Positions 1 through 35,192 of a DNA stretch of 64,000 nt are shown one piece after another (position 1 is the first letter of the stretch; each line of letters starts with the position of its first letter). The position numbers were made by a program, and so were the translations under genes. The notes beneath the pieces are model-generated. The model was not told where the DNA came from, made no database searches, and saw nothing but the letters and a program-made list of their open reading frames with translations. Source of the DNA: Paragordius varius (Eukaryota; Animalia; Nematomorpha); NCBI GenBank assembly GCA_964247055.1, contig OZ176052.1:3038001-3102000 (forward strand). The letters are read 5' to 3'.

Positions 1-423
1 TAAATGGATAATTTATTTGGACTTAATTGACATTATATTTAAAACAAATAGTATTTTTTTTAATTAATTGCCAATTATCCTTTTAAAAATATATATACAC
101 CTGTACAACCACAATGCGTTAGTTATAAAACGAATTCCATTAAATTATATTTTAATTATTTCAAATTTAATATTGAGTATTAAATAGTTAAACATTATTA
201 TATACCATTCTATAATATTTTGAAAACTCTAGGGTGTGATTTAAATTTTACAATTTTGTAAAGCATTTGAAATTTAGAAAAAAACGGTTTAAAAATTTTA
301 AATGTATAAAACTAACATTTTATTAATTGATAATAACCTGGTAAAACATAATTATTACGATATAAATACAGCCAAAATACAAGCGTTTTATACTATAAAA
401 TATAAGAATTTTACTCTTTTGAC

Positions 424-600
424 TGGGTATTATCAATATCTTGATTAATCAAATGTTTAATTGCATTTTGTCGAATATTATTGGCTTGAATCAAACTAGT
501 AGCTTTGTGAATTCTACCAAATCCACGTGGCTTAAGGGTAGGGTTTTGATTAGCCTTTGTCGTATTTAATTCATCATCGATTGAATCAGTATATTTATTT
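424..600 (-). CDS. Repeat exon: NKYTDSIDDELNTTKANQNPTLKPRGFGRIHKATSLIQANNIRQNA...
   Basis: tatag| acceptor and |gtcaaa donor, 177 nt, phase 2-2, open; closest paralogue of exon 6847-6671. Confidence 0.75.
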
Positions 601-3600
601 CTATACGGTAGTAAAAATTGGAACTATGAAAATAAAAAAAATAAAAGACAACGAACGATTCATTTACATTGTCTTGCATATACTTGTTTAAACCTTGAAT
701 TTTCCCTTATAAACTATAAATATACTTGAGTGTGACTAATATTATATTTTACAGTATGCATTTTAATGTCTGTTAAGTAATTTTATTGCCTGCCAAATAA
801 CATAAGTGGTTTATCAAAAGCGTAAAATACTGACCCACGAAATTATTTCGTAGTACACATATGAAAGAAGATTGACGTGAAAATTAACATAGGCTTTAAT
901 TTGATGGATATTTTGTAATGTTAAATTTTGGGAATATTATAGCAATTTATGTTAACATTTGTAATATTGTTGTTACGTATTTAGATGCGGAATTTTGTGG
1001 GTTTTTATCTTTGATAAATTAATAAATAGTAAAATACGTATTTTAAGATATTTTATGTTAATTATTCCTAAATTTAATAATAAATATTTTTCAACATGCT
1101 AAATACCTGTATTAATTAATCTTGGTATCATAATATTATATAGTTGTTATTACTAATTAAAAAAACACAGGTAAATATATATTTGTGAAAATTTAAGTAG
1201 ATTTTTGTCTTTTATGTTTTGCATTATTTTTATCAGGTAAAAATTGCGGTTTTTAATAAATTTCCTAAAAATTAAGTTTTTTTTTGTTTTTTAGGTTTTG
1301 CATTGTTAATTGAAATTAATTACTACATATTTTGGACATTATAATAAATAGAGGTAAAAATTGCGGTTTTTAACAAATTTCAAATGTAACATTTTTTGTA
1401 TCTTGTATCATTGTTATTTAATTAATTACTAAATATTTTGGACATTTAAAAAACTTGTGTAAATTGCGGTTTTTATTAAATTAGTAAATTTTATTTTTTG
1501 TTCAACCTTGCTAATTTATTTATCACTATATATTTGTGATACATTGATATATACAGGTAAAAATTACTATGACTTGCGGTTTTTTGAATTTTTTAAAATA
1601 TTTTTTTTACATTGATAACTTATATAATAAATATAGTTAACATATCTGAGTAGGTAAAAATGCATATTACGGTTTTATGTTTGACATTTTATTTTCCATC
1701 AACTATTTATATTTTAACAAACAACTTATGTCACCAATGATTGAAAATAAGATCAAGAAATATAAAACATCTTTTAAAGTACTGAATATCGCCAAATATA
1801 AATAAATTTATTTAAATTATAAATGTATAATTATACAAAATATTCATATTATGTTTGAAATTAACATTCTTCTTATTGTTATTAATACAGGTAATTTGTT
1901 TATATAATTGATGTACGATGCGGTGTGCGTTCATGATGATCATATGGATGGAAGAATAGTATAAGATGTAGATAATCCTGAAAATTTTAATCACCATCAT
2001 TTTTTAGGTAGATATCACCTAAAATATAAGATAATTGATATATTAGAAAATTGATACCTGGAAATATTGGGGGAAACATTCATAGTTTGAAAGGAAATCA
2101 AAAGGTTGACTTGGCTTTTTAACAACTAAATTTGCAAAAAAATATTTTCTTCATGATAAAAAATTCAAAAATGATACCTTATTTTACGTTTTCGTTTTAC
2201 CATCCTAAACTATAAATATAAAAAATTATTCTTCACCAAAGCAAACAATGTTAGTGTTGCCTGCTTTTGGAGTGCTGTTGCATTCCAAGCTTTTGAAAAA
2301 AATTATTTGTTTCTATTTTCTATTTGACGTCATTGGTATGGTGAAATCATATAAGCCTTTTCATATTTATAGTTTAGGATGGTGGTAGAACGAAAAAAAA
2401 CATAAAGTATCATTTTTGAATATTTTATCATGAAGAAAATATTTTTTTGCAAATTTAGTTGTTAAAAAGCCAAGTCAACCTTTTGAGTTTCCTTTCAAAC
2501 TATGAATGTTTCCCCCAATATTTCCAGGTATCAATTTTCTAATATATCAATTATCTTATATTTTAGGTGATAGAATCTACCTAAAAAATGATGGTGATTA
2601 ATATTTTCAGGATTATCTACATCTTATACTATTCTTCCATCCATATGATCATCATGAACGCACACCGCATCGTACATCAATTATATAAACAAATTACCTG
2701 CATTAATAACAATAAGAAGAATGTTAATTTCAAACATAATATGAATATTTTGTATAATTATACATTTATAATTTAAATAAATTTATTTATATTTGGCGAT
2801 ATTCAGATACTTTAAAAGATGTTTTATATTTCTTGATCTTATTTTCAATCTTTGGTGACATAAGTTGTTTGTTAAAATATAAATAGTTGATGGAAAATAA
2901 AATGTCAAACATAAAACCGTAATATGCATTTTTACCTACTCAGATATGTTAACTATATTTATTATATAAGTTATCAATGTAAAAAAAATATTTTAAAAAA
3001 TTCAAAAAACCGCAAGTCATAGTAATTTTTACCTGTATATATCAATGTATCACAAATATATAGTGATAAATAAATTAGCAAGGTTGAACAAAAAATAAAA
3101 TTTACTAATTTAATAAAAACCGCAATTTACACAAGTTTTTTAAATGTCCAAAATATTTAGTAATTAATTAAATAACAATGATACAAGATACAAAAAATGT
3201 TACATTTGAAATTTGTTAAAAACCGCAATTTTTACCTCTATTTATTATAATGTCCAAAATATGTAGTAATTAATTTCAATTAACAATGCAAAACCTAAAA
3301 AACAAAAAAAACTTAATTTTTAGGAAATTTATTAAAAACCGCAATTTTTACCTGATAAAAATAATGCAAAACATAAAAGACAAAAATCTACTTAAATTTT
3401 CACAAATATATATTTACCTGTGTTTTTTTAATTAGTAATAACAACTATATAATATTATGATACCAAGATTAATTAATACAGGTATTTAGCATGTTGAAAA
3501 ATATTTATTATTAAATTTAGGAATAATTAACATAAAATATCTTAAAATACGTATTTTACTATTTATTAATTTATCAAAGATAAAAACCCACAAAATTCCG

Positions 3601-6600
3601 CATCTAAATACGTAACAACAATATTACAAATGTTAACATAAATTGCTATAATATTCCCAAAATTTAACATTACAAAATATCCATCAAATTAAAGCCTATG
3701 TTAATTCTCACGTCAATCTTCTTTCATATGTGTACTACGAAATAATTTCGTGGGCCAGTATTTTATGCTTTTGATAAACCATTTATGTTATTTGGCAGGC
3801 AATAAAATTACTTAACAGACATTAAAATGCATACTGTAATCCCTCACTCAGTGGCGTACCGAGCATTTGCGGCGCCCGGGGCATAAAACTTTTATGGCGC
3901 CCCTCCCCCCTTTTTTTAAAAAAAAGCCAATAAAACAAATTAAAAAAAATACAAACGTTGTAACAACACCATAGATAAGACAGCACAGTTATATAAATTT
4001 TATATCTATTAAATATATATAATTATATGATACTAAATTTATTCATTTTTAAATACATAAATATTCTAATAAATTCCATAATATGGAAATTATATATAAA
4101 AATAATGTTTTTATTGCACATATTGAATCGATCTAATGATAATGGCAACAATGATGATTTAAAAAATTATTTAGGCGCCCCTAAATAACGGCGCCCGGGG
4201 CATGATACACCCCCTTACCCCCCCCCCCCCCCTCAATACGCCCCTGCACTCACTATGAAAACGTTAGGTTTGTTGAAAAAATAAGTATTTATAAATATGA
4301 TTGTCCGTATACAAATTAAGACCTAAAATTTAATAACAAACTTATTTAATAAAATTCAAACATAGGTATTCCTTATATCAATGATGTTTTCTTTTCCTTC
4401 AAAGCTATAGAATTATAACCATACATTGAACAACTAACGCATGAGCGAAAATTACCAAAATCAAATATATTTATTAGTGTATAAAATATGGATTCCGTTT
4501 GTACGTTTAAAACGGATAAAATATTTTGAAAATGGTTAGATTTAAATATGAAAAAAAGGGCATACCCCATATATGGCAAACACATTTGCCAAACTGCTTA
4601 TCATTGTCTAACCCATTACATTTGATTCGGTTATAAATTTATAAGCACATTAATTGTGTCAAAAAGTTAGATAAAATGTTATGAATATAATTTTTCATCA
4701 TATAAAACAATTTTTAAATGGTTCTTTGAACATAAAACTACGGAAAAAAGCAATGATACAAAAATTATTGGCTCAGATAGTATTATCATGAATTTTGGCA
4801 TGGTCCAATATGAATATGCTTTACGCTGGACGAATTAAGATGTGAACATAGATTTGCTAAAAATTTCAATTGCTGTTCCTTTTTAAATTAATTGGAAATA
4901 CAAGATTCTATTCACCCATTCCATTTGAGGCCTGCTATCAACATTAGTTACGTCCTTTTATATATGGTCACCTCATGATAGCCCCGGGTCTCTGTATTCA
5001 ACCTTTAAAGTTTATTAAATGGTTCTGCAAATGTGATTTATTAATGAAAATTCTATTTTTGAATGATAAGTCACATCCAAAAAAGTTTGATTCAACCAAA
5101 GGGTCTAATCCTGTCGTTTGTTAATTAAATTTATGATTACAAGAAATATGTTTGATTATACCCCCAAGTTTTTTTGCCAAAATTATGAATAGTCGTTTTA
5201 AAAAGGTATGGACGAAACTCTAAAAATGAAAAGGCACAAGAGCTTCCAAATGTAAAAGGAAGAACGTGGCATTGCTAGCAGAGCCTGGGATGTGATGGAT
5301 ATATGTAATATAATACCATTTTTGCAAAAAAAATTTATGCGAAATCTATGTTTACATTTTCATTCGTTCAATTTAAAAGATATATACATTTTTTTTTGGA
5401 TGATGCCAACAATCATGACACCATTTCCTGCCTCATAAATAAAAATCTTAAAATAAACCAATTGTAGCTGGTTGGTTTTGCTGAATTTATCTTTTATTCT
5501 AAGATATGTCTGACCCCTATTCAGACTGTGAAAGCTCCTCATTAACCCGTAAGACTCTAAAACGCGAAAGATGCAACACCGTATATAATGCATTAAGGTA
5601 TATAGATACGCCTTTTAGAAAATCCGGAATGTTGTCTGTTAAATTTTTAAATCATCATCAATCTTTTTAGTCGTACATCTCGTCTATTATTATTATTGAT
5701 ATTAAATTAATCAACCGTATAGTTAGCGCCTAATATCGGTCAGACTTGCTTTTACTACGACTGTTTTTTTGTGATAATAACGCATTTAAAAACGCTCCCT
5801 TCTTTTTTTACAATTAATAATAGTTTATCCAAAAATATTGACATTTTATTATGAATTTTGTGTTGTCCTATGACACCAAAAGAAAACTAACTATAAATGC
5901 TAAAAGATTAAATTTTAAATAAATACGTTAAAAAAAGCTCTAACCTATCTATAGCATGTTTGGACATATCAATTTTTGAATTAACATTCCTATTCCTCTT
6001 ATTTCTTAAGTGTGGATTAAACGATTGGCTTCTTTTGACTTTGGAAGCAAAGACATGGGTAGTCATACTTTTAACAAAAGTTTGTTCATTAATTATTACG
6101 TCTTTATCAGTGTCATCACTAAAATGTATATGAAAAAAAATTTAAATTAATAAATGTAGAGTTTTGGGTATAAAAATTGTTTTCAACCATATTTTTTTAT
6201 TTTTTTATATGAAAAAAAAATGAATATATCGGGAATGAATTACATGTATGACATGTATAAAAATGGTACTAAAGGTATTAATTAACATGACTAAATAATT
6301 TGTATAAACTTTTGATGTAATTATATATCTCTGTTGACTTATAAACGTAATTGCCATTCATCTAAAATCAAAAGTATATTTATACATTAAATAAAACACA
6401 TTTGCTATTCAAAAAGCCTTTTTGTGGTTAAAACCGTGACATTATTTTATGAGTGTGCGGATCGTATCTAAATATATTTAAATCCACAACCAAAGTATCA
6501 TCAATGATATAAGGTGGGGCATCTCCCTTATGAATGGTGTTTAACAAAAAATTAATTTTTTCAACTTATTTCAAATGTTTCATTTGTCCGTTAAACTAAC

Positions 6601-9600
6601 TGAGTATCCAAAAAAAACATGATAATGTTACAACACCAAGTCAAACTAATTATGTCAAGAAAAAAATTACCAATTAGGGTGTGTTTTTTCAAAAATAGCT
6701 TGATGTTGTTCGTTTGCATTTTGTTGAATATTATTGACTTGAATTTGGCTTTTTGTTTTGTGCATTCTACCAAATCCTTGTGGTTTAAGAGTTAGGTTTT
6801 TTGTGGTATTCGATTCATCATTATTCGATTCATTGCGTTTGTAATTTCTATATTAATAATAATATGAGAATTAAGGATATTATAATGAAAAAAAAGAAGA
6901 TAAAAACCTAAATTTCAAATTAACTAACATATTCATCTGATGGTTCTTTGAGGGATGCCATTTCTCATAGAATCAGACAAGGATGGGCCAAATTCAATCA
7001 ATTAAAATATATTTTAACTAATAAATATATCAAATCGAATCACAAGATAAAGATTTACAAAATGGGAATAAGACCAGCTATGACATACGCTACAGAAACC
7101 TGGGCCCTTACAGCAACAGACCTAAATAGACTTACTAGAGCTGAAAATCACATGCTCAAAATCTGCAACAATAATTTTGATAATACCATAGAAGAAGATG
7201 AACCCATAGCTTTATTCATCCAGCGCAATCGATTGCGATATTACGGACATATTCAACGTATGAATTCCGATAACTGGGTCCAAAAAATACAACATTTAAA
7301 TATACCCGGCCCAAACAGAAAAGGCCGCCCTAAGCTCACATGGTCCAAACAGCTGACCCAAGATCTATCACACTTCAATATTGAACACGAACAAGTCTTT
7401 GATAGGACATTGTTCAGGAAGTTGGTGCATGGAAACCCCAGATACCCTGGGACCTAAAATGAATGGATATTCATAAAATGCAAAACGACATCCCTGTAAC
7501 TAATGATGTTTACCCTTTGGAATATGTCACATATTTAACTATTTTTTGGTTGTGAGATTATTTCCATATATTTAGGCTAGGATAAGAAAAATTTTAAAAA
7601 ATTTATTACGAAATGTATTAAAATCAATCCTAATGTTGAAAACACTGCCATATAAAAATACTATATATTTCAATAAGTGAAAACTGACGTTTGAAAATTC
7701 AACATATCCTATAAAATTTAAATTTTTGTTTTAAAATTTATGTATAAATATAAATAATATATTTATATCATTAAAATTTATCTTTTTAATTTATCTAAAG
7801 ACCACTATTTCAATAATTTTCCAATGTAAGATAAAACGCATACTCGGTTGTTTGATTATCTAAATTCGTGTTTTGGTCTATATTTATGGCTAAATGATTC
7901 GATCGATAGGTAGTGTTATTAACTTTATGCATTTTACTAAATCGGCTAGGCTTTAAAAGCACATCTTGATAATTATCCGTATTAATTTCATCGATCAAGG
8001 AATCGCCTTGTATACCGTTTCTAAATATAGTATTGATATATATAAGGGCGTGAAACAAAAACAACCCAATAATATAAAAGTATTTATAATAAACTAAAAT
8101 TTGTTATTATTAATAATATTACAGTTATATTTTTAACCTATTTAGAATTTAAAACATTATTTTAACGTAAAGATCATCATTATGTAAGATTAATTAATCC
8201 CTGAAAAATAATATAAGGCATGACTCATAAAAAAGTATACGAAATAACAACAATTTTTTTCCCAAATGATTTGAGTTGACTATATATCTATGTTTACGAG
8301 CTATTTATTGGAATATTTAATTTTATTTAAAATTATATATAATTTTCATTTTCATCGTATGTCAAAACTTTCAAGCAATTAATTAGATATTAAAAGCATC
8401 CTGTTATGCCCCATTGTAAAAATAATATACTGTTATCCAATCAAATCAAATTTGGTGCTTAAATCAATTTTATCGCTATCACGCCGTTATAAAAACGATT
8501 CTTTTTATATATTTAGGAAACAAATTACTTCTTCTTTGATAAAATAGGGACATTTTCAACAATATTTTTGAGATGAAGAGCATTGTTTAATTTGTGCATT
8601 TTACTGAATTGACGTTCTTTGCCAATCAGGTTTTCATCAAAATTTTCGTCGTCGCTAATTTCATCATTGACAATATTGGAGCAATTTTGATCCCCTAATC
8701 TATTTTGATTTGATTTAAATTTTAAAAAAAATTTGGAAAAAATGATTTTTGCTAAAATATATATTTTGATAGCAAAGAATCATATATATATATATATATA
8801 TATATAATTTTAATAGAGCCATTGATTATTAAGATTTTTGTTATACATTAAACAATAATAAAACAAAAAACGGCTCCCATAATTTTGTCTAAAAAAACCG
8901 TAGAGAGCCTTAAATCTATTTTAAAATAGATAAAAAACTATTTTACAAAATAATTTTCATATAAATAACAAATGTTTACATGTATGTTTATAATCCTATC
9001 ATTTATATTTAACGCAAATGTTGCATTTTTTTGTTAATTTTGTTTTATTTATATCTTATTATTATTTTCTTTTGTTTTAGTTAATCCATTTAAAAAGATA
9101 CTACCATGTATATAATTTTGGATATCAAAAAATATTTTTATAAAACACCTATTTATTCCATACTTGGATTGAGTTGAAATCTCGTCCAATTTAATAACGG
9201 CGTCTATTGGATTAAGTTTTGTCATTTTATCATTATTTGAGATGTTTTTAGTTTTACGTTTTTCACCAAACGGGCGTAGAGTTTTGATGAGATTGCATTC
9301 CATGTTAGAAATATTTATTTCATCGTTAAGGGTTGTATTAACTTGATGATGGCTGTTTTTTGTAAGGAGTGTACGTACATAATAATTATTGAAACAAATA
9401 AAGTTTAAAAATTACAAAAAAAGATGATATCTAGCAATAACTTATTATAAGGAATATCATTTATAAACCAAATTTGAAAAAAAAAATAATTAAAATCTTT
9501 AGTAATAGGATGTATTATTAATAACAGATCATCTAAGATTTTTAAATATATACCATTTGCGAAATCACCCTTGAACAATTTAAAATCACCATAAAAATTT

Positions 9601-12600
9601 GTGTTTTTCGGGCTTATATAACTTATTATTTAAATGAAATATATCTTTATAGCTTAGTTTATAATCTTTTCCGTATTATTCAAATTTGAACAAAATTTTA
9701 AAATATAAAAAATTATAGGTTAAATCTTATTTTTAAAAAACACAAAATTTATTTTCGGGTGAATGTGAATTTTCAAGGGTATATATCGTTTCCTAAAATG
9801 AAAAGTTGATTATTTTTTCAATAGTAAAGGAAACACTTAAATTTAAACATAGCGCATTGAATTTTAAATCATATATTAATTTAATCACAGATTACACGGT
9901 TGACATAATATTATTACTTAATATTCTTGCTGGCAGTTAATTCAATATTGTTAGTATTGTTTTGTTTACTATTTTTTGATTTATGCACTTTCCCAAATTG
10001 GGGTTTCTTTACATCAATCGGATTAACCAAATTTGATTTAACATCATTTAGAACGCTAATCGATGAATTATCATGTTGATGATTTCTAATTATTGATGAA
10101 AAAAATTTTATAAAGTATTTTTGATAACAACATCTTATATATCTAAACTCTTCTTTTGATTAGTTAATTGTGCCATTTTTTTGTTTTTTGCCCATAATTT
10201 CGGTTTTGCATATTCAAAAAACGGCCTAATTGAATGGTTTTTTTCAGACAAAAATAATTTTGATTCCGGTTCTATTGTTGTTCTTATGATTGAGTTTTCA
10301 TCAAAACTAATCGGTTTGGGTAGAAAAAAGTGTCTATGTATCATTAACTGTCGATCAATGAAAATGTTTGATTTTTAGAAAAAATTGTTCATTATTGTAA
10401 AATTTTATTATTTCAGCCCAATGATATTTGACTTCATTTGTAATTATATTAATTGATTCTTAACTTTTTTAGGGCATTAATATCCATATTATTCGAATAA
10501 TATTTGGATGTATTGGCTAAGGTTGTTCCATATTATGCCTTTTAACCTGTTAGCTTTTGCAAAAAGATTTTTTACATTATTTAATAAATCTTTTTATTCT
10601 GTCAATAAATCGGTAAAGTAATAATGTTCTTCCCATATAATAACGATAAAAATAATATGCTGATATTAAACATTTATTAGTTTGATAATTTTTACCGCAT
10701 TTTTAGCCAATTTCCTATACTTTTTGATAAAAATGAAAAGTTAAACCTTTTAATCAACAAAAAAAAGTTAAAAAGAAACTAAAAAATACTTTTTTGATAC
10801 GCTAATAACAGCATTTTTCGATTGTTCCATATTATAGGTTTGATTAATATCATTTGTTTTATGCATCTTTCCAAACGGACGAGATTTCACTGTAACAAGA
10901 TTTTGATCAAAGTTCAAATTATCTGACTCAACACTATTTCTGTTCACAAAATTATGAAATAATTGTAATCTAATTTATATTGCAAATAAAATTTTAAGGA
11001 AGAAATACTTATATATTATAAAACAAATAACTGTTATTTAAGCAAAAAATTCATGCTTATATAAAAATTCAGTTTTCTATTTCCATCAAAATGATTAATA
11101 AACTAGAGGTGTAATTATTATATAGAATTTAAGACAAAGCGTTAATTTAAAATAAAAGTTATATTTTTATAGCATACTTAAAGAGTAAAACACTCTCAGC
11201 CAAGCGTATTTAGAAAAATTTTTACCTAATTAAAATTAGAGATGTTTAAGCCCCCCCCCCCCAATCCTACATTTTACAAAACTAATCATATAATTTAAAT
11301 AATGATAAATAATATTGACACTATTTATTAGCATAAATTGCGGTTATATATATATATATATATATATACCATTTACTATTAAATTTACCCTCAAATAAAT
11401 TATATGTTTTTTAAGATTAAAAATTACCTATTTATATATTTCCAAAAAATAAAATTTTGTGTTGTAAATTAAAATAATACTGAAAAAATAAACTTTGCCA
11501 TAATGATATATTTCAATCAGTTATATAAGTTCGAAAACACATAATTTTATTTTTAGGGTCAATTTGAATTGTTCGAGGATGAATTGTTCGAGGGTGAATT
11601 TGAACTGTAAATGGTATACATATGCGCACTCGGACTCTTGCATATATTTAATGTTCACCCAATTAGATTGAAAAAAGGACCTACTCTGTTATAAATGGTG
11701 TTCCCAAAACAACATTGTTTTTGGGGATTCGTTGAGAAAAAGCGTTTTCTTTAGCTACTTTTTTATGGATTTTTCCAAATCGAGCAGTTGTTTTATGATG
11801 TATAATGGTATTTGGTTCAAATTTTGTTACATTTAATTCGTCGTTTAATGAATCATTTTGTTCTACACTGCCATTTCTATGTATAGTGGAGTCAAAATAA
11901 TTTTTTGTAATTTTTAACACAAGAATTATGCAATATCCAACAATTAAAATAAAATTATTACAAAAAAATTAAAAATAATACTCTTTTGAAAGGGCTCTGG
12001 TGGAAATGGATTGTTGCTGAGCAATTTTATTTAGATGCCTGATTTTGGGTATTTTGCTATAAGGCTTACGATTTTTGATTGTACTCTTAAGGGTTTGAGT
12101 ATCATTATTTATTGAATCAATAGATTTTTGATCTGATTCCAAATATCTATATTTTGAGAAATTAAAATATTGTTAAATAATTACTATTCATCTATTAAAA
12201 TACTCACCATACATAATTTTTTATATCATGTAAGTGTGCCCCTAACAAAACTTTGAGTACATTAAAATATTATAAAAACAAATAATGATAATATAATTAC
12301 ATTTAACAAGATATCAAAAAGCTAAAATATAAGCGCCTATAAATTGATTCATTCACCGGTTTTATTTCAAAAACTCACACCTTATTTTAAAAATGCATAA
12401 TAAACACCGAAGGCTGTTTATAAAAAGGATGTTTAAATATAAATTAATTTTTACTGTTTAGCATTATGCTTATCACATCCACCAATAATTTTGGGTATTT
12501 GAATTTGATTAAAGCGTTCATCCATCTTAAGTTTGTCTCTATTACGGGCTTTTCCCCATCCAAACCTACTTGTCTTTTTTATTGCATCAATATTTATTTC

Positions 12601-12669
12601 TGGCATATTGAAAGTACTATTATTGTTAATATTTGCCATAGTGACAGTTGAATTAGCTTTAGGCCTTAA

Positions 12670-12704
<35 letters not shown>

Positions 12705-14384
12705 TAAAGAGAAAGCTCAATTATATTTCATATATCTATAAAGACTGCTTTAAAAATAAAACCGGCATAACTACATTCCTTAAATCTCGTTTTACCGATT
12801 GAGGGTTATTGGACCCAGTTTAACAAAAAATACTTTTTTAAACGTTTGCGGTCTAGGCCTTGCTAAAAAAATGTTTTGCATAATATTATTAAATAGATAA
12901 CATATAATCTTACATTTTAAATCCAAAAAATGTGTTTTATGATTATTTCGCCAAAAATTATTAAAGTCATAAAATTTTTTCATATTATAAAACCCTGATA
13001 TTACGTATTATAGCCTTGTGATGAGTTGTAATTTACTTATATATAAACCTATGATAGATAATTATATAAAATATTAGTTTAAAAACATAAAATAAATTAA
13101 AAAGGCATCATTAATTGCTTAAATAAATAAATTTAGTAGAGAAACATAATTTACTACATATATATAAAAATACATATATTATCTATATATATATATACGG
13201 ACCTAAAATCATTGGAACTATTTTTGTTTTCTGGTTTGTTGATGTTTTCTAAAATTTGACCTCCTTTGATTTTTGACAAAGTTTTTGATTTGTGAGTTCT
13301 AAATTTATGTTCTGTCGTTTTTGTAAATATCTGATTTATACCGTCGCAATAAGAGAAATCTGTTGATATATTGTCATTAGATGTGGCAATGACATGTTTT
13401 ATTCTAAAATATAAAAAAAAGATAAAGACAAGCATACATTAATTTCAAACTAATTGACCATAATTTATTTTAGAGATATTTTTTTTAATTTTTTAATTAA
13501 AATATGAATTAATACCTATAAAACGTATATGCAGACAAATTTATTTTAGTGCATATTATTAGTATTTTAGCCATTTTTTACCTATTTTTGTCCATACATT
13601 CAAATTTTTCGATTTTTGGACAATCACAATGTTTAAATCGCCTTATTAAAATATAAAAAACTTTTTGCCGTTTTTTTTCGCAAAAAATATTATTATGTTA
13701 TTAAAATAGGGGTGTTCAACACAGATACTTCATAAGCTGCTTTGATAAATTTTTTGTTTTTTTATTGATATAACTTTAAATTAAATTTTTTTATCGAAAT
13801 CTAATTTTTATTATTTTAACATTTACAACCCCTTTTTACAAATTTATGCCGGTCAATGATATATGATGATATTTACATTTTAAAATTAAACAAAATTTTA
13901 AAGAATTTGTACGGTTCCTGTTTATTAGTAAAAAAGGTTTAACTTAATAAATAGGTGTTGTTTACTCTTTAGATTGTGCAACAAGGATATCGTTTAAATC
14001 CATATGTTTTGCAGATACAATATTTTATATGGATTGTATAAATTTGTATATTCATCATCAAATTTTAAATGTCTATTTAAATGTGTGAAAAATTCAAACT
14101 GTTAAATAAAATGAATTTTGAACTTTTAAAATATAAAAAACAATTTGGGGTCACCTAACAGTGAGAACAAACGATAAGCAAAATGTGCAATCTTAGCCCA
14201 TTATAAGTACTTTAAGTAGATGAAATGATTACATAGCATGGAAAAAAAGAAAAAAAATTAGCAACTATATATTAATTTATCATATTTATGCTAAATGAGT
14301 TTTTCCCTGTTAGCAACGTGCAAATATTTATTGGTTTCAAAGCGGTGTCTATGAATTTAAATTATAGCACAAATTTAGAAGTAC

Positions 14385-14423
<39 letters not shown>

Positions 14424-15545
14424 CAATATGGATTATGCAACAAAGTTTATTTAGTTGTTATGAACTAATTTATGGTTTTAAAAAGCGTTTGCGTAAATAA
14501 ATGTATATTTTAGAATTGGTCATAATAATTACAAATTAAAATATAATTCACTCGATAATGTAATGAAAGATGTTACCCATTTCTATCAAATTGCTCTAGA
14601 AAAACTACCATTGGATTACGTCTTTGGTATAGGGAAAAAATTGTAAATATACACGAATAAAACTAACAACAATATATTAAACACTGCAAAACATATGGAT
14701 TCGAACGATATCCTTGCACAAAAGTTAAACCTTTTGTGGTAAAAAGAAACCATACAAATTCTCCAAAATTTGTTATTTAAAATGTAATATCATCTAATAT
14801 CGATTGCCGGTATAAATTTCTTAAATCAGGGGTGTCCAACACGCTTTGTTTGGGGTCCTCAATAATGCTTTAAAAAATGTTAAAAAAATAAAAATTGGAT
14901 TTCAATGAAAAAATTTTGATTAAAAGATATATCATCCAAAATTAGGCTTAAAATAAATAAAAAAAACAAAAAAATTATCAAAGCAGCTCGTGAAGATATA
15001 TGTGTTGGACATTCCTGTTTTAAATAATATAATAATATTTTTTGCAAAAAACGGCAAAAAGTTTTTTATATTCTAATAAGGCGTTTTGAACATTGTGATT
15101 GTCCAAAAATCAAAAAAATTTGGTCTGCTATTTGCCTTTATAAAATGTATCGACAAAAATAGGTAAAAAATAGCTAAAATTCCGATAATATGCACCACAA
15201 AAATAAATTTGTCTGCATATACGTTTTATAGTTATTATTTTGTAATATTTTAATTAAAAAAATTTAAAAAATATTTTCAATAAATTATGGTCAATTAGTT
15301 ATAAATTATTGTATGCTTGTCTATGTCTTTTTTTATATTTTAAAATAAAACATGTTATTGCCGAATCTAATGACAATATATCAATCGATTTTTCCAATTG
15401 CGACGGTATAAATCAGATATTTACAAAAACGACAGAACCTAAATTTAAAACTCTCACAAATCATAGACTTTGTCAAAAATTAAAAAAAAGTCAAAATTTG
15501 TAAAACATCAATAAACCAGAAAACAAATATAGTTCCAATGATTTT

Positions 15546-15579
<34 letters not shown>

Positions 15580-16889
15580 TATTTGGGTTATTAAATATGT
15601 ACTTCTAAACACTTGTGCATTAATTTGAATTTAAGACCCCAGCTTTGGAAAATCCGAAAAATATTTGCACTTTTCATACAGGGAAAAACTGATTTAGCCA
15701 CGTTGATAAATATGATAAATTAATAAATAGATGCATACTTTTCCATGCTATTTAATCCTTTCGTTTACTTCAAGTACATTTTGGTTATTGTTTGTTTGTT
15801 CTCACATGGTATTTGACCCCATGTTTTGTCATTTTAAAAGCTTAAAATTTATTAATTTAAACGGATATTTAAAATTTGATTATAAATATAACAACTATAC
15901 AAATTTATATATATATATATACAGTTTAAAGTCTCTTTTTTCCTTTTTTTATCAAAGGCAAAAACTTAAATTGTATCCGGACATGTTAAGGCTTTAACAC
16001 TCGCCTGCCTGCCCAGGGCTGACAGTGATGATGAAAAAATTGCGTAGTTTCGGGTTTGAACACTGGCACGCAGTGGAAGAGTCCGGCGCCCTACCTAATA
16101 TACCATCATCCTTATATAAATATATAGAAATAATTTGAAATTCTATAAAAGTGATTGTATGAAATTTGTTTGTAAAAAATAAAAAAGGTAAACGGTTGGG
16201 TTAAAAAATACTTAAAAATATTATTTCCCATACATTTTATTGTTTTCGGGAAGTTTATCTGATTCATTAAACACAGGGATTGCTGATTTAAGTTTTGTAT
16301 ATTTGTTGTTAGCGATTTTGGTTTTAAATTTTCTATTGGCAATGGATGTAGTCATATTTTGCTTTTTTTCTTCAATTATATTGTTGGTCATGCGTTTGCT
16401 AAATAAATAATAATTTAATTACCTTTCAATAAACCAATATATTTTATTTAAAAATAAAAAAATTTTCCAGAAATAACTTAAATGAATCAGTATGGTTAGA
16501 TTTTTCCACTTCGCGGTTAAGATTGGTAAATTGCCTTAAATAAATATTGTTGACAGGGACATGGTGATATGGTTTAAAGTTCCGATGTCTTTTTGAATGA
16601 AACTTTTTATTTTTATGCAAATTTTCTGAAAAAGCATTTACATTTTCTAAATCAAATGAAGTTTCATTTAACTTTGCAGTATGATTGTAGACATGTTTGG
16701 TTCTGGTAAAAAAATAAAGAGTAGTGAAAAATTTTATGCAGGTTTTAATGTTATTATTAAATAACATACTTATCAATTTTAGATTTATCGACTAGCCGTT
16801 TAGCTTTCAATTTGAGGCTTTGCCACGGTGTTTTAGAGGTGTTTTTTGATTCCAAAAATTTATAGTATTGTTGGTGCAAATTATTGGGA
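424..16889 (-). CDS. Unknown multi-exon repeat protein (partial; >=~890 aa, N/K/S-rich, repeated F[GS][KR]xHK motif); both ends probably not captured
   Basis: Manual reverse-complement translation gives open exons, each bounded by AG/GT in phase 2 at both ends and of 3n length: 16889-16770, 16702-16478, 16398-16234, 13403-13203, 12664-12455, 12146-11982, 11876-11685, 10939-10790, 10085-9918, 9352-9164, 8699-8529, 8020-7844, 6847-6671, 6118-5945, 600-424. Two more (14072-13966, 10333-10149) are 3n-1. Seven exons contain an exact F[GS][KR][MIV]HK motif. Confidence 0.75.
752..3836. mobile_element. Foldback-type non-autonomous DNA transposon with ~1.47-kb inverted arms (Tc1/mariner-like TA|CAGT...ACTG|TA ends)
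   Basis: Arms ~752-2224 and ~2357-3836 are reverse complements (paired coordinates sum to 4588, including the mirror ORFs 1812-2000 and 2588-2776). Spacer ~135 bp. TA on both flanks. Internal subrepeats (caggtaaaaattgcggttttt) roughly every 110 bp. Confidence 0.85.
3849..4246. mobile_element. hAT-type MITE (~400 bp)
   Basis: TIR cagtggcgta / tacgcccctg (1 mismatch); 8-bp TSD ccctcact / cactcact (7/8); GC-rich subterminal ggcgcccgggg repeats. Confidence 0.8.
6671..6847 (-). CDS. Repeat exon: NYKRNESNNDESNTTKNLTLKPQGFGRMHKTKSQIQVNNIQQNA...
   Basis: tatag| acceptor and |gtaatt donor, 177 nt, phase 2-2, open. The track ORF 6591-6773 is a different frame. Confidence 0.75.
6948..7457 (+). mobile_element. 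5'-truncated non-LTR retrotransposon (RTE-clade-like) ORF2 C-terminal fragment
   Basis: ORF has RIRQGWAKF, KIYKMGIRPAMTYATETW, NRLRYYGHIQRM and GRPKLTW, typical of the post-RT region of RTE LINEs. Lies antisense in an intron of the repeat gene. Confidence 0.85.
7844..8020 (-). CDS. Repeat exon: NGIQGDSLIDEINTDNYQDVLLKPSRFSKMHKVNNTTYRS...
   Basis: tttag| and |gtatgc, 177 nt, phase 2-2; lies within track ORF 7810-8064. Confidence 0.75.
8529..8699 (-). CDS. Repeat exon: LGDQNCSNIVNDEISDDENFDENLIGKERQFSKMHKLNNA...
   Basis: aatag| and |gtaatt, 171 nt, phase 2-2, open; not in the ORF track. Confidence 0.75.
9164..9352 (-). CDS. Repeat exon: HHQVNTTLNDEINISNMECNLIKTLRPFGEKRKTKN...
   Basis: aacag| and |gtatgg, 189 nt, phase 2-2. 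Confidence 0.7.
9918..10085 (-). CDS. Repeat exon: NHQHDNSSISVLNDVKSNLVNPIDVKKPQFGKVHKSKN...
   Basis: attag| and |gtaata, 168 nt, phase 2-2; not in the ORF track. Confidence 0.75.
10790..10939 (-). CDS. Repeat exon: NSVESDNLNFDQNLVTVKSRPFGKMHKTNDIN...
   Basis: aacag| and |gtattt, 150 nt, phase 2-2; not in the ORF track. Confidence 0.75.
11367..11616. mobile_element. MITE with taccatttac / gtaaatggta TIRs inserted at a (TA)n tract; related ends near 9549 and at 55852-56485
   Basis: 10-bp perfect TIR plus a subterminal ttaccctc / gagggtgaa match; flanked by TA. Confidence 0.6.
11685..11876 (-). CDS. Repeat exon: NGSVEQNDSLNDELNVTKFEPNTIIHHKTTARFGKIHKKVAKEN...
   Basis: catag| and |gtaggt, 192 nt, phase 2-2; lies within track ORF 11681-11920. 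Confidence 0.75.
14827..15017. mobile_element. hAT MITE sharing TIRs with the 52448-54966 element
   Basis: caggggtgtccaac ... gttggacattcctg; TSD tcttaaat / ttttaaat (7/8). Decayed inverted copy at ~13708-13835. Confidence 0.75.
15320..15545 (+). pseudogene. Dead inverted copy of repeat-gene exon 13403-13203
   Basis: Acceptor AG mutated (tttag|aataaaa becomes ttttaaaataaaa); 2-nt insertion (aactcac becomes aactctcac) shifts the frame to an early stop; orientation opposite to the gene. Confidence 0.7.
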
Positions 16890-17908
16890 CTAAAATTATT
16901 TAAAACTATGTTGCCTGCCTTTCATTATCTTTTAAGGGGATCATAATGCTTTACGGTGATTTGTTAGCGGCTTCTTTTTTGAAAATTTCATATGGTTTTA
17001 ATTGTCAATGATTAAAATATGATTATATTTATTTAGAAAAATTTGGGGGAAAGCTTAACAAGGTCTAAATATAAATATTTATACCAATTTTAAAATTTGA
17101 TATTAAATATAAAATAATTTTAGAGTGTGAAACGTTTTTAAGATCTAATTAAAGTTTAATTGCTCTGGCCTTATTAAATATGGAGTTTGCATCAAGCTAC
17201 ACAGTGTCGAGGATAAGAAATTTACCTGGATGTATCAGGACATAATGGTGGTGTGTTTTACAAATAAGATATAAGAAAATGGAGTATTTACGAGTTAAGG
17301 TTTCAGAAAATGGAATATTTGCGCAATGAACGCTAAATGCATCTTTCGTAAAATATCACTCGAAGAAATTAATAAAAAAAAATATAAAAATTGATTTTAG
17401 ATGTAGTCATTATTTGGACACTTAATGGGCTAGTTATTAGTATAAAATTAAAAATTCTGAACTTTGCAATAAATTGTTTTTGTTGTACTAAATTATGACA
17501 TAAAAATTATTTTTTTAAAAGGGAATATTTTACTTAAACAAATTACGGTTTTGAAAGCTGTTATAGTCATCTTTTAATTATTAACACTTTTCTTATGGAT
17601 GAAAAGGTTGCATTTTTTGAGTTTTGTGACTTCTGGTCTAAAATTCGCATCCAAAACACGTTGAAACGAAATACTGATATTAAAATCAACTAAAACAAAT
17701 TTTTGCAGATAAAATGTAGACTCAAGCTAAAGTTATTTTTTTACATTTTCTAACCATGAAGGAGTTTATGCTGTTTTATTGGTGATTTAAAAATATCCAA
17801 CAATAGTAGAAAAAACGTTTGAGATAAGTTTTTTTAAAATTTACCTATTTAACACTGGCAATACATTCATTTTAAATTGGGGTAGTTAAATACCCCAGCC
17901 CTGTTTAA

Positions 17909-25960: not shown

Positions 25961-27431
25961 TTGTGGACGTTTTTTTGAAAAAAATGGCTTTTTACGGGGG
26001 GAGCAAGTAAAAAGATGACCTAAATTAAAAAAGCGAGCCGACCATGTCCGGCGCAATCGAAAATTAAAAAAATCTAATTTTAAATTAAATGGTCCAACAC
26101 GTTGTGCGGAAAATTGTCTCAATGACACGATATTTGTGGACTTCTGTTTTCAAAAGACCCGTTTTTTACACAGGGTGGGCCCGAACTGGGGGCCTAATTC
26201 AAAAAAAGGGCGAAGCTATTGTCGGGGCATTCCTTAATGGTTATATTTTTTCGACATTTGGATTTGAATGGAACCGGTTTTCCGGGAACAGATCACAAAG
26301 CCAGCATTTTCCATTTTTATAAATATATAGATTAATGGTTAAATATGCATTCTATGGCACAGCTTGTAATGCCTAGTTTCCGTTATATATTTTTCAAAGT
26401 TTTAGCCAAATGGGTTAGAAAAAATTACACCTTATATAACCTTTTAACTTTTAATTTATGGTTTGATACTATTAAAATTTTTTTCTTTCGAATGGTTTGG
26501 GGGGGGATTCACAGAGTTTACATGCGTAAAATTTATTAAAATTAAATTTTTAATATGTAAAATGAGCATAAATATTTGCCCCTGAAGGGATAATCCTTAT
26601 AATCTTAAAATTATTAACCTATTAAACTGAAGATGAACCCGCCGCTGTATTGAAATCCTCAGAAAAAAATAAACTTTTTTTACACGAAACACGGATTCGT
26701 TGAAAATTTTCTATTAAAAAATTTTTTTATGGCCCAATATAATATATTTTTATAATTTTAAATTATTAATGTTAAAAAATACGTAATTATCACTTAATTA
26801 ATGAATGGAGATCACACAGACAACACATATTTTTTGTTGAAATTATAATTTGTTTTTAATATATATATACACCTCCTCTCACATCCTTTCTTCTACTAGG
26901 CTGATGATATTTTTTTACAACATACTCTATATAATTTTACGCTTAAATTTTTTTAAATGCTCAATAATATAAAATATATACTGGAAAAAACATTCAGTTG
27001 TTTAAAATTTCTCTGCAACATTGTATTATTTTCCAATTTTCGGATACTGACTTATAAATTCTATACAGACGAATATGAATAATCTTTTGTAATTATTATC
27101 GATCATCATTGTGGTTTTTAGTAAAAAAAAAATTTTCTACAAACCATTACAAACGAGCTCAAAACGAGTTCGCTTTTTATCACTAGTAGTAGAAGTATTT
27201 AATTCTTCTGTTATAACCATCCAAAATAAATTTAATATCTATCTCAATTTTATGTGATTTAAAGAAGATTTTGAAAATAATATTTCCATTCACAGTTAGC
27301 GAAAATCCAATCCGTCTCTCTCTTTGTCTCTCTAAATATATTTCTATTTTTTTATAATTTTTATTAACTACGCGGCGGGTGTTGTGACCATTTTAATTCT
27401 AGTTACTATGGTAACACCATGATAAAATATT

Positions 27432-30615: not shown

Positions 30616-33600
30616 ATCAAGATCCAAAATGTGCCTGTGAGCAATCCATAATAAGTCAATTAATCCAACTTTGCCGTCTTGAGAACACATTCGTGCCTGA
30701 CTGCAAACCTGATGGTCATTATAAGGATGTCCAATGTCACACATATACCGGTTACTGTTGGTGTGTCGATCAGAATGGGAATCCGGTACCACGTACGGCT
30801 ACCACGATAAATAACCGACCCGTTTGCAATAGTAATAGATTTTAGTTAATTTTACGGGATTATTATAAGTAAAGCAATTTAAAAAACTTGTTAATATATA
30901 GTGTATGTAATAAGTGTAAGTTTTAAATTATTTAAATGCATATAATGGAAGTCAGGCTGATTTGTTTGGAGCGCTATCCTTACTTTTTTGGGAAATCTTA
31001 TATGGCACAAAAATATAAATAGATTTAGGCGCACTTTTTATTTATATAATATCAAAGCCATTATATATTTTTTATTTTTGGTTAAATCGCTGAGAAACTA
31101 ACAAATTAATGTATAATATAATAAAAAAACTAATTATGTAAAAAAGCATTTAACTCGGCAAAATTTATACTTATTTTTCTGTTTTTTTTTGTTAGCCAGA
31201 ATTGGCTCTAGAAGTTACAAAACATATAATTAAGAACATTTTTATCAAATAATTTGGGAGTCATAACAAAATATATTGATAGAATAAATTTTCTGATAGT
31301 TTGTACCTAATCTGTCAAATAAGTTAGATAATTCCATTTATAAAATAACTACACCTTATCAAAAAATCGCAAAATTCTAGACAAAAAAGTTTTGCATGGA
31401 AGCTATTGCTTCATACCAAATTTTTATATAGCATGTATAAAAAGCTAAAAAACATTTATATTAAATTAATTTTTATTACGCTTAAATGGGCCAGTTTTTT
31501 TTAAATAAACGCAAAATAACTGGGTGCGCGATAGTATATCTGAGGAATTCGAATATGGCATGCGTGCCCATAGTGTACGCATTTAATACTCTAATTATTT
31601 TACCACGCCTTTTTTTACTCTATATTTAACTAATTATTTGTATTATTACAGTAATGTATCCTTTATTTTATCAAAAAATCTAATATTTTCGTTAAATGGG
31701 TATAATTTAGTAAAGAATGGAAAAAACAAGAGCTCTATGGTAAATTTTATACTTTTTTGTGAATATGATATTGTTAATACCACAAAGCTCTTGTTTCCAT
31801 TCTTTACCAAATATTTATACCCATTTAACGGAAAAATTTTTTTTTGATAAAATAAAGGATACATGACTGTATAAATTTAAAAATTAGGATCATAAAAATA
31901 TATTAAATATATTTAAAATTAATTTTGTTTTTATATACCACAAAGTTAAAATCAAAATGGCACGGAATGTCAGAGGTAATAAACGGCGCCGTAAGCGGTC
32001 TTGTAACCGGAGAGATCGAACAATCTTTAACCGACGAGTCATCAAATTCTTCATTTATGAATATACGCAAAAAAATAAAAGTATGCGATAATTTCAAATT
32101 TATTTTTTTTAACGATATATTAAAAAATACATTATATACCATTATTTTTAACCAATTTTATTTCAAACAACAGATAAGATCATAACTTTCTCTCAAATAA
32201 TGTTTTATACATCTTTTTCAAGATTTCAACCAAACATTCATCTGGTCTAATATCAATAATAAAAATAATAATCCCTCGAAAGCCAAAATTTTAAATACCG
32301 ATCAAGAGAATAATCCAGGGCGTCGTACAGGCCATCGTTTCAATAAAATAACCCGTAAAATGGCTATCAGGTGGAAATTTGTTTTAGCAGATATGGATGG
32401 TGACTCTTTCATATCACTCCGGGAGGTGAGAATCCTGAAAAAGCAATTGAAACGCTTCGTCAAGCCTCGGAGTTGTGCCAAAAGTTTTGACATTGATTGT
32501 GACATGGATAAGGATTCGCGAATATCTTTCAAAGAATGGAATTCTTGCCTAAGCATCTATCAATCAAGTAAAATTAGATGAATTATTCTAAATAGACCCC
32601 TTCTCCACCCTACCTTGTTTTAGAAAACTTAAATTTGATGTAAAAGTAGCAATAATATCAATTTTTTAGCTAAACACTTAATCTTTAAGGCAGTGGTATC
32701 ACTAGAAAATTTTGAAGGGCCGAAATTATTTTTTTAAGGCCCGCGCACCATAAAATATTGACAAATATCCCATAGTTCTTTGACACATAAGCAGATACTT
32801 ATAATCTAAATAAGCACATCAAAATATTGTAACACTTTTAGGGCCGTATGCGGTTCGTGGGCTGCGGTTTGAGTATTACTGTAATGAAACCATCTCGGCT
32901 CATAATAAAAGATCTTAATATTAATGACAATTTTAGTTATTTAATCCCATTTTAACATCATTTGAGAAGATAATCCGCAGAGAGATAAAAAAACGATTAA
33001 TTTTGATTTACTCAGCCTTGATATAAAATTTAACCGTATGATTCATTTCTAAATTCTGTCGTAAATGGGTGATAAAGAGTTATCTCATTCTCTTATAAGG
33101 CAATAATGCTTTTACAGGACGGTTACTATTTACTATTAGTGTTTTATCATTTTTTTATGGTAAGAAATTATGGCTAATATGTTTTATACAACTTATATAG
33201 TATCATTCAAATTATTTCTTTCGCTCAATACGGAGGAAGATGATTTTGAAGCACGCTTGGACCATGATAAAAGTACTATTTATATATGTTTTTTTATGTA
33301 ATAACAAAAAATGTTAAACATATAATTTAAAATTGTTTAAAAGTTAATTGATATATATTTTATATCTAACTTATATTATACCTATTTGAACATTAAAAAT
33401 GCAGATTCTTTGCGAGGGCCTTCACTATATAACAAACAACTCAATTTTGAATCCCTAACATCCAAAAAATCAATCCTTATGCCTAACATCATCAAATCAA
33501 CCGATTCAAAAAGTATGCCATCCATAATATATGTGTGATGAGTATAATAATTCTATTTCATACGCAAAATTTTTTAATTTTCATCCGAAAAAAATGTTAG

Positions 33601-35192
33601 ACATATTTTGTAATCGATCAGTCTAAAAATAAACCATATAACTAAAAATTATTAATGCCCTGTATAAAGGTTTATACATTTATATGGCTTCCATATATCT
33701 ATACTTTTTACCGTATTTAAATACTTAGCCTAGTTGTTTTCTAATTATTTCGAACCATTTGTTGTGTATAACATAAAAGCATACATTTTATTGAAAGAAT
33801 AAGACAAAATATCTATAGAAATACGGTTACATGTTTTTATACTAGTTGTTAAACCAAATTGTTTCGCTGAACGAGACAAAGCTTTGTACGATGATAGGAA
33901 AGATCCGAATGCTGGCATTTTTATACCCAATTGTACTATAACCGGTTATGCTTCAGTCCAATGCCACAAGGCTACGGGCTATTGTTGGTGTGCCAACACT
34001 GAAAATGGAAAACCCATACCAGGGACCTCAAGGCTTAATTCCCGCATCGATTGTGAACCCAAAACGGTCGGGCAAGAAGAGAAAAGGAAAATAAAAAGTA
34101 TGTGATATTCATTGCGTTTCCACTTAAAATATAACAAATATTTGGAAAGTAATTTAAAGCGTAACATGCAGAAAATATTTCGAATACATATTTTTGTGAA
34201 ATGTAGGCTTTAATACATATTTTCGTTTTAATTTCTAGACATTAAGCCTTTTTGTGAGCGTAAGATATAGTCCCGTCCATTCTTTACACCTATATCCACG
34301 GGCAATAAAATATTTTTTAAAAAGTATGGTCTTAAAGAAAAATATTAACTCATCATCATTTGAATATTTAAGATTTACAAATATTTGCTATATGATAAAG
34401 ATGCTTCTTGCTCTTATAAAAAACTTTTGCACTCTCCTACGATTAGATTGTCCTGAACATTTATTTACCCATTTCCTTCACAGACTGATTGACGATTTAT
34501 CGAAAGAAATGATAAGCGAATTTACCAAGCAACCCAAAAAGTAAATACTTATTTTATAAGTATCAATACCTGATTTTTCCATAAAAAAATATTAATGATT
34601 AAATGTGTTTAACCCAATATCATAGTTTATATAAACATATTTCGTCAAATTGTATAGCCCTTTATATGTTTTATATATATTTTTACATGTAGCCTTTTAC
34701 CATGGCTAAAAGATAATCAATCATTACAAGAAAAAGCCGTTAGGTGGAAATACTTCAATATCGATCAAAACAAAAATGGGGTAATTTTAAATTTTTTTAA
34801 TATAAATCAAAGTTATCTTAAAATATAATATTGAAAAAAAAAATATATCGATAGTTCATCATAAAAATGGCTATTTTACCAAGAATAATAATTAATTTAG
34901 CCGGATAATTTATTTTGAAATTTATACGAGAATCTGTTTAACTGTCGGCTATTTTTCAGATCATTTATATATTCCAGTTGTTTATTATAGCTTCGGCTAC
35001 AAATTAAACTGTATCACATGAAAAAAAAACTAGGTGCTAAACAAACCAGAATGGCGCCTCCTAAGAAAATCGTTTCGTTTACCGCGCGAACATAGAAAAT
35101 GTCTTCGAAACTTTCCTCGGTACTGCGACAAGAATATGGATAAACAAATTACCATGACTGAATGGTTAACATGCACGGGAACTCACCATTAA
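30616..35192 (+). CDS. SMOC: SPARC-related modular calcium-binding protein (SMOC / Pentagone-like), TY-EC-TY-EC
   Basis: Phase-consistent exons 30616-30831 (TY: QCHTYTGYCWCVD), 31946-32080, 32223-32567 (EF-hand pair: WKFVLADMDGD...CDMDKDSRISFKEWNSCL), 33201-33272, 33405-33512, 33846-34097 (TY: QCHKATGYCWCAN), 34447-34540, 34693-34780, 35034-35192 (PRYCDKNMDKQITMTEWLTC, stop). Confidence 0.85.
31649..31869. mobile_element. 221-bp palindromic MITE (TA|CAGT...ACTG|TA) in a SMOC intron
   Basis: ~95-bp inverted arms (cagtaatgtatcctttattttatcaaaaaa / ttttttgataaaataaaggatacatgactg); explains mirror ORFs 31638-31847 and 31646-31864. Confidence 0.8.

Follow-up and report, generated by a model that had tools for sequence, protein, structure and literature searches.

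A putative single-copy gene of tandem, motif-bearing exons on the minus strand of a Paragordius varius contig

The 64,000-nt stretch of the Paragordius varius genome analysed here (contig OZ176052.1, positions 3,038,001 to 3,102,000 of the forward strand; hereafter the window, in whose coordinates all positions are given) carries near its beginning a minus-strand locus in which short peptide modules with the motif F[GS][KR]xHK recur. The locus is very likely to be a real protein-coding gene. An initial annotation had proposed a gene of about 16.5 kb with at least 15 exons; on sequence comparison, statistical support is limited to nine modules between positions 415 and 12146, the segments further upstream not being significantly module-like, and the remainder of the proposed extent is hypothetical. 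The G+C content is approximately 25% across the whole window, which is compatible with a horsehair-worm genome given the 26.9% G+C of the published Gordionus assembly (bioRxiv 10.1101/2023.06.26.546503).

A six-frame translation of the window contained seven exact occurrences of F[GS][KR]xHK (504-521, 6757-6774, 7924-7941, 8591-8608, 9980-9997, 10858-10875 and 11762-11779), the same seven that had been quoted previously. All seven were minus-strand occurrences within 504-11779; the plus strand and the rest of the 64 kb contained none. After base shuffling, a six-frame translation was expected to contain 0.16 hits and never contained more than 2. Each exact motif lay within an open frame of 61-97 codons. 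A profile hidden Markov model (HMM) built from the seven exact modules and searched against 1346 open frames added two minus-strand frames, 9052-9411 (E 4e-4) and 11972-12172 (E 1e-3), with all of the remaining 1337 frames at E >0.4. Degenerate versions of the motif (FGEKRK, YSKIPK, RFGWGK and HKFRTHK) and acidic blocks (IDDELN, LIDEIN, VNDEIS, LNDEIN and LNDELN) were also present as first described.

Alignment of the modules, which are 49-63 residues long, revealed three shared elements: an acidic block around D-S-[LI]-N-D-E-[LI]-N, a basic block K-P-x-x-F-[GS]-[KR]-[MIV]-H-K approximately 10-20 residues past it, and, some ten residues beyond the basic block, a weak N-N-I-x-Q. Outside the acidic and basic blocks the modules were N/K/S-rich and poorly conserved. 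When the hexapeptide was excised and N-terminal profiles were tested in a leave-one-out design, the left-out module ranked at the top of approximately 1100 frames in five of nine cases, and the N-terminal part of 11685-11876 was recognised without its motif at E 1.4e-5. The C-terminal parts were never significant in this test (nine modules, approximately 1100 frames), in agreement with the earlier description of the rest of each module as poorly conserved. The conserved unit is bipartite, an acidic block plus a basic motif, rather than a single motif.

In all nine modules the homology started at AG followed by A, mostly AG/A-AAT (the slash marking the splice site), so that the open frame reads R-N, and it ended at [AG]A/GTA. 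The exon ends implied by the initial annotation at 600, 6847, 8020, 8699, 10085, 10939 and 11876 were indeed AG acceptors in phase 2. Each of the nine exons began and ended in phase 2, with a length of 150-192 nt that was always a multiple of three; for six of them, the open frame was closed by a TAA or TAG within the donor GTAA or GTAG. Chained together, the nine exons gave an uninterrupted frame, with 611 codons in the supported part. Because the exon lengths are multiples of three and the phases are the same, any module exon could be skipped without a break in the frame. The splice junctions of the module gene are predictions from its sequence.

Only one pair of modules, 415-600 and 6671-6847, could be aligned at the DNA level in a blastn self-comparison. 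Similarity within this pair opened exactly at TATAG/ and stopped at /GTAA, with the flanks at chance level, and the four internal insertions or deletions (indels) measured 3, 9, 6 and 3 nt. The two exons differed at 7, 12 and 24 sites in codon positions 1, 2 and 3, respectively, and the Nei-Gojobori method gave a non-synonymous divergence (dN) of 0.227, a synonymous divergence (dS) of 0.839 and a dN/dS ratio of 0.27, compared with 1.24 and 0.97 when the same aligned DNA was read in the two shifted frames. A ratio of 0.27 over so old a duplication (dS 0.84) indicates that both copies stayed constrained. Across the ungapped motif block of the nine modules, mean pairwise identity was 0.71, 0.63 and 0.53 at codon positions 1, 2 and 3, and codons within the motif varied synonymously (GGT/GGA/GGG, CAC/CAT, TTT/TTC and AAA/AAG). 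These comparisons demonstrate frame-specific purifying selection on the module exons, and the selection originally proposed for the motif was borne out at the codon level in the one alignable pair.

Read-level data were available from four runs aligned to 7500-13499. All four were DNA, with contigs crossing introns, and no spliced joints matching the predicted junctions were present in them over this interval. Word depth in one DNA run (X4) was approximately 50-150 in exon bins and 10^3 to 6x10^5 in intron repeats, the high-depth repeats lying at 8900-9100, 9500-9900 and 11300-11700. The exons are at single-copy depth, and the modules are therefore single-copy sequence and not a dispersed repeat. 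A match of the modules to a satellite or transposable element, raised at the outset as a finding that would overturn a coding interpretation, is contradicted by this depth, by the single alignable pair and by the frame-specific constraint.

Two of the four DNA runs came from one sample bearing the window's species label, and their haplotypes were 4-9% diverged from the window. Exon-dominated contigs from these haplotypes (715 nt in total) contained no gap letters, and mostly-intron contigs carried 9-38 gap letters each. Among the twelve indels listed, the sole exonic one was a 3-nt in-frame deletion at 7894 (exon 7844-8020). The exon single nucleotide polymorphisms (SNPs) listed, which like the indels are a small, pre-filtered sample, comprised 2 synonymous and 11 non-synonymous changes, and none of the 13 fell within the hexapeptide or the acidic block. 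This pattern fits frame-preserved, fast-evolving linkers around conserved motifs. Divergence of 4-9% under the window's own species label suggests deep population or cryptic-species divergence. We also noted that runs labelled as two other organisms contained low-depth contigs identical to the window (0 differing letters over 150-270 nt), which suggests infected-host or mislabelled samples.

At the 3′ end, the last module exon may be followed by a micro-intron and a short terminal exon (Table 1). The resulting tail (LYFGCIYIVIIMFYQVII) has an 18-residue Kyte-Doolittle mean of 2.3 and depends on splicing of the candidate 22-nt intron, as the protein would otherwise stop at a TAA overlapping the donor (413-415). 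Open frames ending as hydrophobically were few (15 of 1346, or 1.1%), and no other Kyte-Doolittle window above 0.51 was found in the 611-residue supported model. An intron of 22 nt is plausible here, given that the window's kinesin gene requires introns of 22-24 nt, and the hydrophobic C-terminal tail is itself a plausible feature of the predicted protein. Exon 6671-6847 ends in TG, and joining it directly to 415-600 creates a TGA stop codon. This problem is removed if either the mini-exon 6591-6645 or the candidate exon 5927-6118 is used as the next exon. The former would make exon 6671-6847 the start of a duplicated alternative 3′ end, with its own module, micro-intron and tail; the latter had no significant likeness to the modules (hhalign P 0.22).

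Upstream of the supported array, the segments between 12455 and 16889 were open, in phase 2 at both ends and multiples of three in length, with local profile matches in the right register, but their similarity to the module profile was not significant (hmmsearch E at least 0.37; hhalign P 0.017, 0.48, 0.11 and 0.63). A tentative full model forms one open frame of 936 codons from 16991 down to 323. Its ATG at 16991 matches an acceptor at 16905 and not the acceptor at 16889 used in the initial annotation, and the N-terminus read from it (MKFSKKKPLTNH) is basic and non-hydrophobic. Hydrophobic phase-2 start candidates in the 16.9-32 kb interval numbered only three, and one signal-peptide-like start exon, in phase 2, was present at 27048-27109.

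Table 1. Predicted exons and micro-introns of the module gene, listed from the upstream (5′) to the downstream (3′) end. Slashes mark splice sites.
Feature	Position	Strand	Details
Tentative first coding exon, ATG at 16991 (MKFSKKKPLTNH)	16955-16991	-	joined via a 49-nt intron; conjectural
Possible upstream exons	16770-16889/16905, 16478-16702, 16234-16398	-	phase and position only; introns of 67 and 79 nt
Possible degenerate module exon, HKFRTHK	13203-13403	-	phase 2-2; within one arm of a 2.7-kb inverted duplication
Possible degenerate module exon, RFGWGK	12455-12664	-	210 nt; phase 2-2; hhalign P 0.017, in register; hmmsearch E 0.37
First module exon of the supported array, degenerate YSKIPK	11982-12146	-	165 nt; phase 2-2; HMM E 1e-3; acceptor AG/A, donor GA/GTATTA
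Module exon, LNDELN ... RFGKIHK	11685-11876	-	192 nt; preceded by a 105-nt intron
Module exon, PFGKMHK	10790-10939	-	150 nt; exact motif, splice register
Module exon, QFGKVHK	9918-10085	-	168 nt; exact motif, splice register
Module exon, LNDEIN ... PFGEKRK (degenerate motif)	9164-9352	-	189 nt; HMM E 4e-4
Module exon, VNDEIS ... QFSKMHK	8529-8699	-	171 nt; exact motif, splice register
Module exon, LIDEIN ... RFSKMHK	7844-8020	-	177 nt; exact motif, splice register
Module exon, GFGRMHK, paralogue of 415-600	6671-6847	-	177 nt; ends TG/GT
Candidate alternative terminal mini-exon, C-LTWCCNIIMFFLDTQLV-stop	6591-6645	-	via a candidate 25-nt GT...AG micro-intron, 6646-6670
Candidate internal exon	5927-6118	-	starts with T (TGT after 6671-6847); phase-compatible
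Last module exon, IDDELN ... GFGRIHK	415-600	-	186 nt; exact motif, splice register
Candidate 22-nt micro-intron, GTAAAATTCTTATATTTTATAG	393-414	-	GT...AG; follows the donor of exon 415-600
Candidate terminal exon, D-IKR-LYFGCIYIVIIMFYQVIIN-stop	323-392	-	transmembrane-like tail; right phase; stop at 323-325

Taken as a whole, the locus is probably best explained as a single-copy, multi-exon, minus-strand protein-coding gene of tandem-duplicated modules that encodes a multivalent scaffold with a membrane tail. Such a gene would have arisen as an exon-plus-intron unit was duplicated in tandem, and its product might serve as a docking scaffold in which approximately nine copies of the bipartite motif, carried on flexible linkers, bind one partner. 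The hydrophobic tail encoded past the 22-nt micro-intron could tether the protein to a membrane on its cytoplasmic side, exon 6671-6847 may be followed by a duplicated alternative 3′ end, and skipping of the frame-neutral exons could change the number of motif copies. Of these components, the multivalent scaffold is one for which we regard the case as evenly poised, and the tail-anchored version is tentative and rather doubtful.

Several observations weigh against this explanation. Transcript support was absent: the runs that matched the stretch were all DNA-like, and the share of sampled words present in runs labelled as RNA from this species was 0.00. Divergence of 4-9% between individuals would, however, itself hide exons from a 31-mer index. 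Open reading frames (ORFs) of at least 50 codons were common in the whole window, equally frequent on both strands and found outside the locus too; ORF length was for this reason dropped as evidence of coding, and the openness of frames of module length proves nothing on its own. With 11 of the 13 listed SNPs non-synonymous, the greater part of every module is under little constraint. Predicted elements of the model include its N-terminus, the micro-intron and thereby the membrane tail, and AT-rich DNA easily yields hydrophobic frames. The claim that the protein is largely disordered is compatible with an AlphaFold model of one module, which had no secondary structure (predicted local distance difference test score 60, predicted template modelling score 0.14), but this is weak evidence, the input being a 12-row alignment of paralogous modules.

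The same C-terminus could instead belong to an extracellular or surface protein with an upstream signal peptide and a glycosylated ectodomain, in which the tail would act as a glycosylphosphatidylinositol signal or a tail-less type-I anchor. The hydrophobic stretch does follow a short polar spacer and continue to the end of the protein, although the residues at the would-be omega site appear poor. N-x-S/T sequons number 18, of which four share a position immediately past the acidic block; the sequons are not enriched over shuffled sequences (12.9, standard deviation 3.0), and a sequon is retained in only four of nine modules. As for a signal peptide, the start exon at 27048-27109 has the right phase, but it is 10 kb away and unsupported, and the nearest in-frame start at 16991 gives the basic, non-hydrophobic N-terminus described above. 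On balance we regard a surface protein as quite unlikely.

We consider it improbable that the locus is a decaying or never-expressed relic of a once-coding tandem exon array. The missing RNA support and the excess of non-synonymous changes among the listed SNPs (11 of 13) would suit a relic, as would the large palindromes and the fragment of a long interspersed nuclear element (LINE) found inside the locus, but the open frame, the AG and the GT have been kept in nine of nine modules, and exonic indels are in frame or absent both between paralogues and between haplotypes. The TGA that arises when 6671-6847 is joined to 415-600 is avoided by either of the two alternative junctions, and the dN/dS of 0.27 across a duplication as old as dS 0.84 points to constraint on both copies.

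A precursor of multiple amidated, FMRFamide-like peptides is very improbable. In such a precursor the glycine of x-F-G-[KR] would be the amide donor and the following K or R the cleavage site, and F-G-[KRE] does occur in six of nine modules with a basic residue 3-5 positions upstream. The indispensable glycine is, however, replaced by serine in three of nine modules, and the downstream x-H-K is better conserved than the glycine. The cleavage sites would be monobasic, with the upstream K followed by proline in three modules, and the tentative N-terminus at 16991 has no signal peptide. A protein exceeding 600 residues with a single peptide for every 170-nt exon would be unlike known precursors. 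It is scarcely credible that satellite or transposon fragments mimic the motif by chance, as might be supposed from a repeat-rich locus with a high-copy element and two palindromes, because exon depth is single-copy against 10^3-10^6 for the intron repeats, the modules lack DNA-level likeness beyond one pair and yet keep the peptide with synonymous changes, and the selection signal is frame-specific (dN/dS 0.27 against approximately 1 out of frame).

Returning to the scaffold gene, we found no known family to which its modules belong, as the initial annotation had also reported. Pfam searches with the peptides of 15 exons, admitting E values as high as 10, returned no recurring family and no MORN repeat, a sequence search of PDB gave one chance match only (E 1), the ESM Atlas yielded only unnamed or low-scoring look-alikes, and a text search for six hexapeptide variants found no occurrence in the library of papers searched. 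A profile of 12 modules gave 0 matches at E <=0.001 against 1.84 billion representative proteins in a library apparently lacking this genome's proteins, and a 97-residue open frame had no match among 5.8 billion proteins. A receptor encoded in the window finds not even itself, indicating that this genome's proteins are missing from the word-indexed library; coverage of the phylum in it is probably minimal, and blank searches cannot show lineage restriction. The motif family, judged from these sequence searches, appears to be undescribed.

We also compared the nine aligned modules with short motifs of other systems. The EB1-binding SxIP motif was rejected with only YSKIPK fitting it, the LC8 TQT motif with a single instance, and WH2 LKKV, the PP1 motifs RVxF and SILK, D-box, APIM and IQ on reading the alignment. 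MORN/junctophilin repeats (Y-x-G-x-W-x-x-G-K-x-H-G-x-G, with a 23-residue period), which combine a G-K-x-H-G core with a C-terminal anchor, were dismissed on the lack of a Pfam match and the module period of 49-63 residues.

Repeat-motif scaffolds such as the kinetochore protein KNL1, whose disordered region contains MELT-type modules in arrays, provide multivalent docking. By analogy, the predicted protein would resemble KNL1 in having tandem modules of about 50-60 residues in which only short motifs are kept between fast-evolving linkers, expanded by repeated duplication. The MELT consensus M-[ED]-[ILVM]-[ST] was nevertheless rejected for these modules, whose blocks read DELN, DEIN, DESN or DNLN: D-E-[LI]-N has asparagine where MELT has its phospho-acceptor threonine, with serine in one module only (VNDEIS), and no match to KNL1 or any other Pfam domain was found in the modules. 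Unlike KNL1, each module here has its own exon, and a hydrophobic C-terminal tail is foreign to KNL1.

Treacle (TCOF1) repeats and titin PEVK exons have one repeat per symmetric exon. The locus would share with them an origin by exon-plus-intron tandem duplication and repeat exons of the same phase, divisible by three and skippable, but it has a different motif and no sequence relation to them. Schistosome micro-exon genes are likewise strings of symmetric, frame-neutral exons with one short motif each in a parasite genome; their exons are 6-69 nt and in phase 1, compared with 150-192 nt and phase 2 here, and unlike them the predicted gene had no signal peptide at the nearest in-frame start examined. 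A micro-exon gene of that type, in which most internal exons are symmetric and no longer than 36 nt and a signal peptide is present, was rejected on exon length. If the predicted junctions are correct, the protein would resemble tail-anchored proteins in ending with a single hydrophobic segment, approximately 18 residues long, that follows K-R, and in a tentative N-terminus with no signal peptide; no relative was found among known tail-anchored membrane proteins.

A more specific proposal, which we think unlikely, is that the gene encodes a hairworm-restricted, tail-anchored scaffold with at least about nine undescribed bipartite motifs, putatively acidic D-S-L-N-D-E-L-N plus basic K-P-x-x-F-G-K-M-H-K, whose copy number and attachment would be tuned by exon skipping and two 3′ ends. 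Few animal phyla have been studied less than the horsehair worms, whose gene catalogues are thin. If expressed, the locus would add to this thinly catalogued phylum an unannotated gene of approximately 12-17 kb and a new conserved peptide motif that is directly testable. It would also be a clean example of exon-plus-intron tandem duplication building a multivalent, mostly unstructured protein, and it may show micro-introns of 22-25 nt being used to attach a membrane tail. No long-standing question is opened, as the architecture of one repeat per symmetric exon, with short motifs in a disordered protein, is already familiar and its principle well known.

The locus contains several repeats. A 3.1-kb near-perfect palindrome at 749-3839 (arms of approximately 1.5 kb, 98% complementary, around a centre of approximately 130 nt) lies within the long intron between 5927/6671 and 600 and has internal direct repeats of approximately 100 nt at 1235-1565. 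A second, older palindrome at 13155-15860 has arms that are 77% alike; candidate exon 13203-13403 lies in one arm, and the opposite arm holds its decayed plus-strand copy at approximately 15309-15503, with the frame lost past KTTEPKF. Two intronic copies of a very high-copy dispersed repeat occur in opposite orientation at 9562-9786 and 11362-11585, with a word depth of 6x10^5 to 1.9x10^6 in the DNA runs compared with approximately 100-500 for exons. A 169-codon plus-strand ORF at 6948-7457, intronic and adjoining exon 6671-6847, has the look of a C-terminal LINE reverse transcriptase, with no Pfam match at E 0.01.

Elsewhere the window encodes animal genes, namely a kinesin motor and an intronless rhodopsin-type receptor, together with hAT-transposase remnants. 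The remnants (53346-54642, plus strand), domesticated or decayed, matched DUF4371 (E 5e-4) and, below the Pfam cut-off, the hAT dimerisation region (E 2e-3). The receptor (48680-49876, minus strand; 398 residues; Pfam 7tm_1, E 3.6e-14) had no match at E 1e-5 among 5.8 billion proteins, itself included; either it is strongly diverged or the database lacks the phylum. In the kinesin gene, at 37.4-41 kb, introns of 22, 23 and 24 nt are needed at 37430-37790 on the plus strand to keep the motor-domain frame, for example GTTTGATTTTATTTTAATGACAG between GYNG and TIIAYGQTG; an intron of 23 nt follows ...SGYNG. Two plus-strand ORFs at 32360-34105 resemble, by eye, exons of a SPARC/testican-type gene, with a putative calcium-binding EF-hand pair (WKFVLADMDGDSFISL...) and a putative thyroglobulin type-1 repeat (CHKATGYCWCAN...).

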